This document shows positions 1,226-3,040 of a DNA stretch of 64,000 nucleotides, in pieces. The notes beneath the pieces were generated by a model that ran no database searches, was not told the origin of the DNA, and saw only the letters and a list, made by a program, of their open reading frames with translations. Source of the stretch: Macrostomum lignano (Eukaryota); the NCBI GenBank assembly GCA_002269645.1, contig NIVC01000421.1, forward strand, positions 186,001 through 250,000. Reading direction: 5' to 3'. How positions within the stretch are numbered: position 1 is the first letter of the stretch; each line of letters starts with the position of its first letter. The position numbers and the translations under genes are program-made.

Positions 1226-1275
1226 TCAGTCGATTTGGCGGCCACCGTCACACTCGCTGGCGGTGGTGCAAATCT
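1226..1275 (-). CDS. Vasopressin/oxytocin-type precursor, exon 3/3 (neurophysin C-terminus)
   Basis: Acceptor TTTCAG| at 1276, phase 1; encodes (E)ICTTASECDGGRQID*, matching the neurophysin ending CC..ESC.....C; stop TGA at 1228-1226. Confidence 0.9.
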
Positions 1276-1290
1276 CTGAAATTCAGTGAG

Positions 1291-1782
1291 TGTCAGTCAG
1301 TCAGTCAGTCAGTCAGTCAGTCAGTCAGTCAGTCAGTCAGTCAGTCAGTCAGTCAGTCAGTCAGTCAGTCAGTCAGTCAGTCAGTCAGTCAGTCAGTCAG
1401 TCAGTCAGTCAGTCAGTCAGTCAGTCAGTCAGTCAGTCAGTCAGTCAGTCAGTCAGTCAGTCAGTCAGTCAGTCAGTCAGTCAGTCAGTCAGTCAGTCAG
1501 TCAGTCAGTCAGTCAGTCAGTCAGTCAGTCAGTCAGTCAGTCAGTCAGACAGTCAGACAGTCAGACAGTCAGTCAGTCAGTCAGTCAGTCAGTCAGTCAG
1601 TCAGTCAGTCAGACAGTCAGTCAGTCAGTCAGTCAGTCAGTCAGTCAGTCAGTCAGTCAGTCAGACAGTCAGTCAGTCAGTCAGTCAGTCAGTCAGTCAG
1701 TCAGTCAGTCAGTCAGTCAGACAGTCAGACAGTCAGTCAGTCAGTCAGTCAGTCAGTCAGACAGTCAGTCAGTCAGTCAGTC
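1291..1782. repeat. (GTCA)n microsatellite filling neuropeptide intron 2
   Basis: Near-perfect tetranucleotide run with occasional GACA. Confidence 0.97.
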
Positions 1783-1791
1783 GCTACTCAC

Positions 1792-2034
1792 CGCCGACAC
1801 AGCAGACCCCAGGTGCGGCGCATTTGCCCCCAGCGTCGCCAAGGCAACCGTTGGCGGGGAGTCGCCTGCGGCAGGCGGCGGCCCTCCAGCTGGCGACGCC
1901 GCTGCAGTCGAAGCTGCCACCGGCGTTTCTTGGCTCGCTGCTGGCGGTCACGATGCAGCCGAAGCTGCCGCAGCAGAGACGCTCACCGAGACACACTCCG
2001 CTGAGGCCGGGGTCGCCACAGGGCACGCAGGGGT
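1792..2034 (-). CDS. Vasopressin/oxytocin-type precursor, exon 2/3 (neurophysin core)
   Basis: TTCTCAG| acceptor and G|GTGAGT donor, both phase 1; (D)[26 protein letters not shown]...[13 protein letters not shown] has the neurophysin Cys pattern. Confidence 0.93.
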
Positions 2035-2042
2035 CTGAGAAA

Positions 2043-2220
2043 ATAGATAGATAGATAGATAGATAGATAGATAGATAGATAGATAAATAGATAGATAGAT
2101 AGATAGATAGATAGATAGATAGATAGATAGATAGATAGATAGATAAATAGATAGATAGTTAGATAAATAGATAGATAGATAGATAGATAGATAGATAGAT
2201 AGATAGATAGATAGAGAGAT
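2043..2220. repeat. (GATA)n microsatellite in neuropeptide intron 1
   Basis: Direct; serves as the pyrimidine-rich tract on the minus strand. Confidence 0.97.
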
Positions 2221-2654
2221 AAATGGATGCAGTTCACAGCGGTTCACTTCTATTTACGAACTCCTTGCAGCGGGCTCAGGACACGCAGCTGTCTCTTTCA
2301 TTTCATCAAAGCCAGCAATCCGATCAGCTGCTCAGAGTCAGATAATTAAAGTACCCTTTTAAGGCATTCGAGCTCTGTAATTGCTGAATCATCAGTTTGT
2401 CATAAAAAAGGCAAGTTTAAAACTTTCCCTTTCAATTAAGTAAGGAAATTAATGCAGCGCTACATATGATAAATATAGTTTCCTTATATGGTCAGGTGGA
2501 GTCGCCTATGCCTTAATAATATACCTTCTGCAAGCAGCTTGTTAGCTGTATCTGAAAACCTCCCGCCTACTTCCATTCATTGGCGCTTCTATCAATTAGC
2601 ATGTAAAAACATCCATAACCAAAACTGCGCACAATCTTCTGTCTCTCGAACCGT

Positions 2655-2855
2655 CCTGACCCTACCTGTGCGCTGATTCGCTGATTAGCTGCTTCTAACT
2701 TCATGCCATTTCGTCTCCCTGACCCTATCTGTGCGCTGATTGGCTGCTTCTAACTTCATGCCATTTTGTCTCCCTGACCCTGTCTGTGCGCTGATTGGCT
2801 GCTTCCAAATTTATGCCATTTCCTCTCCCTGACCCTATCTGTGCGCTGATTGTCT
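2655..2855. repeat. About 55-bp tandem repeat, roughly 4 copies
   Basis: CCCTGACCCTATCTGTGCGCTGATTGGCTGCTTCTAACTTCATGCCATTT.. recurs at about 2655, 2718, 2773 and 2828. Confidence 0.85.
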
Positions 2856-2925
2856 ACTGGTAATGTTTTTATGATATTGTCTAACAGAAGCCACAATATT
2901 AATAAATACTTATTATTGCTCTCAC

Positions 2926-3040
2926 CGAATCCGCTTCGCTTTCCGCCTGGCGGGCAGTTGTTGATGAAGCAGAGCTCGGCGAGGCTACACAGGCTTAGCA
3001 GCAGTAGAAACGGCAGTACCTGAGCACTCTGACTCGTCAT
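2926..3040 (-). CDS. Vasopressin/oxytocin-type precursor, coding exon 1/3 (signal peptide + CFINNCPPG + GKR)
   Basis: MTSQSAQVLPFLLLLSLCSLAEL-CFINNCPPG-GKR-SGF, donor G|GTGAGA. Join of 3040..2926, 2034..1792 and 1275..1226 = 408 nt = 135 aa, with 14 neurophysin Cys. An in-frame upstream ATG exists at 3118. Confidence 0.93.

Follow-up and report, generated by a model that had tools for sequence, protein, structure and literature searches.

Vasopressin/oxytocin (VP/OT)-type signaling has been functionally characterized in flatworms through the platytocin system of polyclads, for which Kobayashi et al. 2022 (PMC8896804) named the peptide, demonstrated its receptor and its neurons, and found it to act as an antidiuretic and on egg laying; the same study lists PAA87831.1 among the VP/vasotocin precursors of Macrostomum lignano. 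Here we analyze a stretch of 64,000 nucleotides of M. lignano DNA (hereafter the window; assembly GCA_002269645.1, contig NIVC01000421.1, positions 186,001 to 250,000 of the forward strand), whose minus strand holds, once in the 64 kb, a three-exon gene for a precursor with the nonapeptide CFINNCPPG. An initial annotation, made from the letters alone, had proposed a complete VP/OT-family precursor at this locus in a presumed flatworm, and had described VP/OT genes as poorly characterized in flatworms. Our comparisons indicate that the locus is very probably a functional VP/OT-type preprohormone gene of Macrostomum, from M. lignano or a species very close to it, and a second copy of the BOX15_Mlig001406g1 gene.

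The platytocin precursors of Stylochoplana pusilla and Notocomplana humilis are built on the same layout as the window protein, with a 14-Cys neurophysin and a peptide, CFIRNCPPG, that differs from CFINNCPPG at position 4 only. Their overall identity to the window protein, however, is only 30-32%, and they have GKKR where the latter has GKR, Ala or Ser where it has Leu before the first hormone cysteine (Cys1), and a retained Glu three residues after the seventh neurophysin cysteine (Cys7+3) where it has Val. The platytocin receptor is known in polyclads, whereas none has been reported for M. lignano. The arthropod genes encoding CFITNCPPG, the conopressin-type genes of molluscs and annelids and the vertebrate VP/OT genes share with the window gene its architecture and the position and phase of intron 2; the window gene departs from these counterparts in its sequence (32-41% identity), its lack of copeptin and an intron 1 in phase 1 rather than phase 0.

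Results

Gene structure

Read on the minus strand, the segments 3040..2926 (115 nt), 2034..1792 (243 nt) and 1275..1226 (50 nt) join in frame into 408 nt, that is, 135 codons followed by the stop TGA at 1228..1226, and the spliced product consists, in order, of MTSQSAQVLPFLLLLSLCSLAEL, CFINNCPPG, GKR and a domain with 14 cysteines. Both introns are of the GT..AG type, with donors GTGAGA and GTGAGT and acceptors TTTCTCAG and AATTTCAG, so that the coordinates and junctions of the initial annotation proved exact. The exons have a G+C content of 66% against 42.5% window-wide; together with the Pfam score and the 97%-identical M. lignano protein described below, this confirms that the three-exon gene is real and intact, far beyond chance. 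The C-terminal tail is short and the precursor has no copeptin-like extension; besides the candidate polyadenylation signal listed in Table 1, an alternative candidate motif, AATAAC, lies 46 nt past the stop.

Both introns had been described as satellite-filled, which holds for intron 2, almost wholly (GTCA)n (1292-1782), and only in part for intron 1, of which about 40% is repeat: (ATAG)n from 2043 to 2221 and, at 2679-2852, 3.2 tandem copies of a 55-bp unit. In a program-made list of open reading frames (ORFs) the gene appears as fragments only, next to plus-strand ORFs derived from the repeats; those at 1286-2054 were dismissed as genes, being microsatellite translations (SVSQ repeats).

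Precursor domains, alignment and fold

The proposed VP/OT layout of the precursor is borne out. A hydrophobic signal core can be read from the sequence at residues 8-21, VLPFLLLLSLCSLA, and the same residues form a helix in an AlphaFold model; CFINNCPPG conforms to the nonapeptide pattern C-x-x-x-N-C-P-x-G with Cys1 and Cys6 in place, and is followed directly by a Gly and a dibasic site (GKR). Residues 40-128 match the neurophysin family Hormone_5 of Pfam (PF00184) with E=7.8e-8 and 33.5 bits, above the cut-off of 27.2, and the top sequence match in the PDB is bovine neurophysin II, with the cysteines in register.

In a family alignment of 21 sequences, Macrostomum proteins included, positions C1, C6, P7 and G9 of the hormone (C24, C29, P30 and G32 of the precursor) and Gly33 are invariant, as are 13 of the 14 neurophysin cysteines, the 14th being at least 90% conserved; N5 (N28), K34 and R35 are each at least 90% conserved as well. 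The 14 cysteines are likewise found in 103 of 137 retrieved precursors. Identity to the non-Macrostomum members of the alignment is the 32-41% already given. The AlphaFold model, built on this alignment, is of moderate quality (predicted local distance difference test score 66); its top nine fold matches in the PDB are all bovine neurophysin, with target-normalized template-modeling scores of 0.56-0.61, and no other structure falls below E=2.

Intron positions

Junctions were compared between the window gene, its sister copy, a Macrostomum paralogue (two loci), a mammalian vasopressin gene (CYFQNCPRG) and the conopressin gene of the gastropod Gigantopelta aegis. All of them have intron 2 in phase 1, inside the third codon that follows the CC pair (a slash marking the intron: CCVG/EIC in the window, CCDL/DSC in the paralogue, CCSD/ESC in the mammal, CCDA/GAC in the gastropod), and the placing of the last intron at the vertebrate CC-x-x-E/xC site by the initial annotation was correct. 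Intron 1, by comparison, interrupts the mammalian and gastropod genes in phase 0, immediately ahead of the first neurophysin cysteine (RQ/C). The window gene has it in phase 1, two codons ahead of this cysteine (F/DPC), and the paralogue, likewise in phase 1, six codons ahead. The intron of the window gene thus falls within the same inter-domain region as in the mammal and the gastropod, but at a position that is not conserved. We treat this shift as probable intron sliding, which does not count against family membership.

A sister copy in M. lignano

In a database search with the spliced 135-aa protein, the sole close protein is PAA87831.1 (hypothetical protein BOX15_Mlig001406g1, Macrostomum lignano), which is also of 135 aa and is 97% identical, with the signal core, CFINNCPPG, GKR and the whole exon 2 protein identical to those of the window. 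The contig that carries its gene, NIVC01000215.1, is collinear with positions 1-12465 of the window, a synteny of more than 12 kb that, with the protein identity, bears out the inferred flatworm taxon as Macrostomum.

All three exons, their junctions and their phases are identical in the two copies, and the coding sequences are 97.3% identical without a single indel. They differ by 7 synonymous and 4 non-synonymous changes (dN 0.013, dS 0.076, dN/dS 0.17). The replacements, S5N, T124A, E127D and G131D (window to PAA87831.1), touch residue 5 of the signal and the last 12 residues; none falls in the nonapeptide or in exon 2, the latter having 4 synonymous and 0 non-synonymous differences. In the introns and flanks, on the other hand, identity at aligned bases is 88-96% and gap columns run into the hundreds; the introns measure 891 and 516 nt in the window against 1079 and 919 nt in the sister copy. 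Such conservation of coding sequence relative to introns and flanks is the pattern that two functional copies under purifying selection would leave. About 190 bp upstream, holding TTTAAAT and CCAAT motifs, are nearly invariant between the copies.

The nonapeptide and a second Macrostomum family

A word-index protein search gave one match; HMMER, run exhaustively against 1.84 billion representatives, gave 32, and a profile search gave 104 family members, the platytocin precursors of N. humilis and S. pusilla among them. In 136 precursors with a recognizable nonapeptide, CFINNCPPG is confined to two M. lignano records, and the exact peptide is unusual. Two forms lie one residue away from it: CFITNCPPG, present in 53 clusters that are mainly from arthropods, and CFIRNCPPG, present in 17 clusters from molluscs and the polyclads. 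The Asn at position 4 is also known from oxytocin-like peptides of sharks, e.g. aspargtocin, CYINNCPLG.

No paper found by text search prints CFINNCPPG or reports an experiment on it, nor does any print CFVANCPPG (the second M. lignano peptide, described below), and CFINNCPPG does not occur in the supplements of PMC6188537, whose Fig. 2 legend names M. lignano in wording that does not tell which panel is meant. The novelty that had been suggested holds for the rarity of the exact peptide but not for the precursor, given that a near-identical one with the identical nonapeptide, PAA87831.1, was already public and cited in PMC8896804. Novelty is low and the gene is not a discovery: the record already includes the family, its flatworm members and this gene of M. 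lignano.

The second-best HMMER match, an M. lignano protein of 143 aa that shares about 48% identity with the window protein, carries the peptide CFVANCPPG. A cluster look-up identifies it as Mlig003431 g1-g3 (PAA50340.1, PAA63765.1 and PAA85176.1; UniProt name 'Oxytocin'), and the profile search added a further copy, g4. Two loci of this family lie outside the window, on NIVC01001815.1 (positions 3001-5065 of the fetched locus) and NIVC01003664.1 (3001-4711). The paralogue shares with the window gene its layout, the residues EL before Cys1, the phase-1 introns, the position of intron 2 and the absence of Glu at Cys7+3; it differs in overall sequence to the extent just given, in two peptide residues, in having GKKR, in lacking the insertion that the window neurophysin carries between Cys6 and Cys7, and in the place of intron 1, whose distance from the first cysteine of the neurophysin is greater by four codons. 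As far as the sequences tell, Macrostomum has two distinct, old nonapeptide gene families (CFINNCPPG and CFVANCPPG), each in several copies.

As a separate observation on annotation, an older M. lignano model in UniRef, A0A1I8H502 (704 aa), fuses the VP/OT precursor to a translation of low-complexity repeats and a globin-like tail; the model, named 'GLOBIN domain-containing protein', is an artefact that hides the hormone gene.

Other features of the window

The coordinates of the gene and of the remaining features are collected in Table 1. The introns of the ion channel gene are full of tandem arrays. Over the whole window, tandem-repeat arrays with a TRF score of at least 200 make up 44% of the sequence, among them one (AGAAAGAG)n block of 5.7 kb and numerous satellites of 15-150 bp; most long ORFs of the window are translations of these arrays. 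Rfam and tRNA scans of the window gave no matches.

Table 1. Features of the VP/OT gene and of the rest of the window (positions as counted in the window).
Feature	Position	Strand	Remarks
Candidate core promoter	3176..3190	minus	TATA-like TTTAAAT 3190-3184, CCAAT 3180-3176; motifs and conservation only
Upstream in-frame ATG to annotated start	3041..3118	minus	78 nt, most likely 5' untranslated region
Exon 1, coding part	3040-2926	minus	signal sequence, nonapeptide, GKR, first neurophysin residues
Signal sequence	3040-2972	minus	read from exon 1
Nonapeptide CFINNCPPG	2971-2945	minus	read from exon 1
GKR amidation/cleavage site	2944-2936	minus	read from exon 1
Intron 1	2035..2925	minus	891 nt, phase 1, GT..AG
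Exon 2	1792..2034	minus	central neurophysin, Cys1 to Cys12 of 14
Intron 2	1276..1791	minus	516 nt, phase 1, GT..AG
Exon 3, coding part	1226..1275	minus	last two neurophysin Cys, short C-terminal tail, stop TGA
Candidate polyadenylation signal ATTAAA	1084..1089	minus	motif only; 141 nt past stop
Reverse-transcriptase/LINE-like remnant	17968-18396	plus	ORF (LLYNADTWTL...), resemblance seen by eye; no Pfam match at E<=0.01
Cys-loop ligand-gated ion channel gene exons	29771-41166	plus	
Neur_chan_LBD domain	29771-30076	plus	E=8e-17
Neur_chan_memb domain	35755-36171	plus	E=1.2e-18
Weak TM4 match of the channel	40723-41166	plus	
Intermediate-filament (lamin-like) exons	~43000-46600	plus	Pfam Filament E=6e-14 at 46129-46542, weaker at 43387-43800
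SNAPC3 (small nuclear RNA-activating complex subunit 3) exon	51445-52047	minus	E=2.5e-30
C-type lectin domain ORF	58088-58900	minus	E=9e-9
Tandem-repeat arrays (examples)	22867-28527, 30136-32232, 47374-49024, 52037-53711		

Discussion

The evidence assembled above makes it very probable that the window carries a working VP/OT-type preprohormone gene; its expression, its processing, the exact N-terminus of its product, its receptor and its physiology can be sketched by analogy with the described members of the family. The mRNA would be spliced from the three exons and the N-terminal hydrophobic sequence would direct the protein into the endoplasmic reticulum, where the peptide may acquire its Cys1-Cys6 bridge and the neurophysin its seven disulfides. 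In dense-core vesicles a prohormone convertase would cleave after Lys-Arg, a carboxypeptidase would strip both basic residues and an amidating enzyme would use the remaining Gly to form the C-terminal amide. The most likely outcome would be CFINNCPPG-NH2 together with free neurophysin. The peptide would then be released from neurosecretory cells to act on a class-A VP/OT-type G-protein-coupled receptor, with roles that, by analogy with polyclad platytocin, may lie in water balance and reproduction of this intertidal worm.

Several observations weigh against so plain a picture. The exact window protein is absent from a collection of 15 billion protein sequences. The residue before Cys1 is Leu (Glu22-Leu23, 2972-2977), whereas A, G, S, C or T stands there in 121 of the 136 precursors (A 77, G 26, S 12, P 10, L 5, C 4, T 2), all five Leu being from Macrostomum; by the classical -3/-1 rule, as we take it to apply here, a cut after SLA, two residues earlier, would be favored and would leave an EL-extended peptide. 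The neurophysin, in turn, has Val85 (1903-1905) at Cys7+3, a position taken in 97 of 106 relatives by a Glu that corresponds to bovine Glu47, and an insertion of 7 residues makes its Cys6-Cys7 loop longer than the median. In bovine neurophysin II, Glu47 pairs with the free alpha-amino group of the hormone; the missing Glu bears on mechanism rather than on family membership. Finally, the authors of the platytocin study (PMC8896804) report finding no clear orthologue of the VP/OT receptor in M. lignano. Neither the Leu before Cys1, nor the position of intron 1, nor the in-frame ATG at 3118 discussed below had been mentioned in the initial annotation.

There are alternatives at three levels: the status of the copy, the start of the protein and the start of the peptide. 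The hidden polyploidy of M. lignano, with its excess of paralogues (PMC10468722), makes a homeologue of the Mlig001406g1 gene the simplest reading of the window copy, which may otherwise be an allele from another line or the orthologue of a sibling species. Hidden polyploidy would also fit a genome in which only the annotated copy, Mlig001406g1, is in use and the window copy is not, as would the missing exact protein and the presence of just one Mlig001406 protein among those retrieved; yet a copy free of frameshifts, premature stops and splice-site losses, with so low a dN/dS, no replacement in exon 2 and an almost unchanged upstream region, makes disuse highly improbable. As to where translation begins, an in-frame ATG at 3118-3116, in good context (AAAAATGG) and kept in both Macrostomum copies, might add the 26 residues MAKLLFDQTDTLQSSILGCRRKNCLT before the hydrophobic core. 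We consider this quite unlikely: the 78-nt stretch differs from the sister copy at 6 sites that change 4 of the 26 residues, a non-coding-like pattern because of which we read it as 5' untranslated region; the GenBank model of the sister copy begins at the downstream ATG; and the resulting n-region of 33 residues would be atypical of signal peptides.

The third level is the start of the peptide. Should signal peptidase cut after Ala21 (CSLA/EL), the mature product would not be the bare nonapeptide but Glu-Leu-CFINNCPPG-NH2, whose N-terminus might be modified or trimmed further and whose Cys1 would no longer offer a free amino group for the neurophysin to bind. Consistent with such an extension, the residues EL before Cys1 are found only in Macrostomum among the 136 precursors and are kept in both of its families despite signal sequences that are otherwise different; Val stands in place of the Glu at Cys7+3; and all 12 precursors with a non-small residue before Cys1 (EL in Macrostomum, KP in cladocerans) also lack that Glu. 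The co-occurrence is nevertheless a lead rather than a statistic, because it comes from just two lineages and a Fisher P-value is inflated accordingly, and a few precursors with an ordinary residue before Cys1 lack the Glu as well. Leu at position -1 is, moreover, rare for signal peptidase but not forbidden. On balance we hold an extended peptide to be unlikely, and the broader proposition that the Macrostomum VP/OT peptide has a non-canonical N-terminus (EL-extended or made by an unusual cut after Leu), with the Glu clamp of the neurophysin lost, to be similarly doubtful; cleavage directly before Cys1, yielding CFINNCPPG-NH2, is the outcome that we favor. If the proposition were true, the pairing between hormone and carrier would have been rewired, possibly in parallel to cladoceran crustaceans, in which KP precedes Cys1 and the same Glu is lost.

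As a discovery the gene matters little. Macrostomum, however, is a transgenic flatworm tractable by RNA interference, and an exact gene model with checked junctions has practical value in such an animal; the peptides of the two paralogous families, the EL before Cys1 and the missing neurophysin Glu are targets for peptidomics, knock-down and the search for the receptor.

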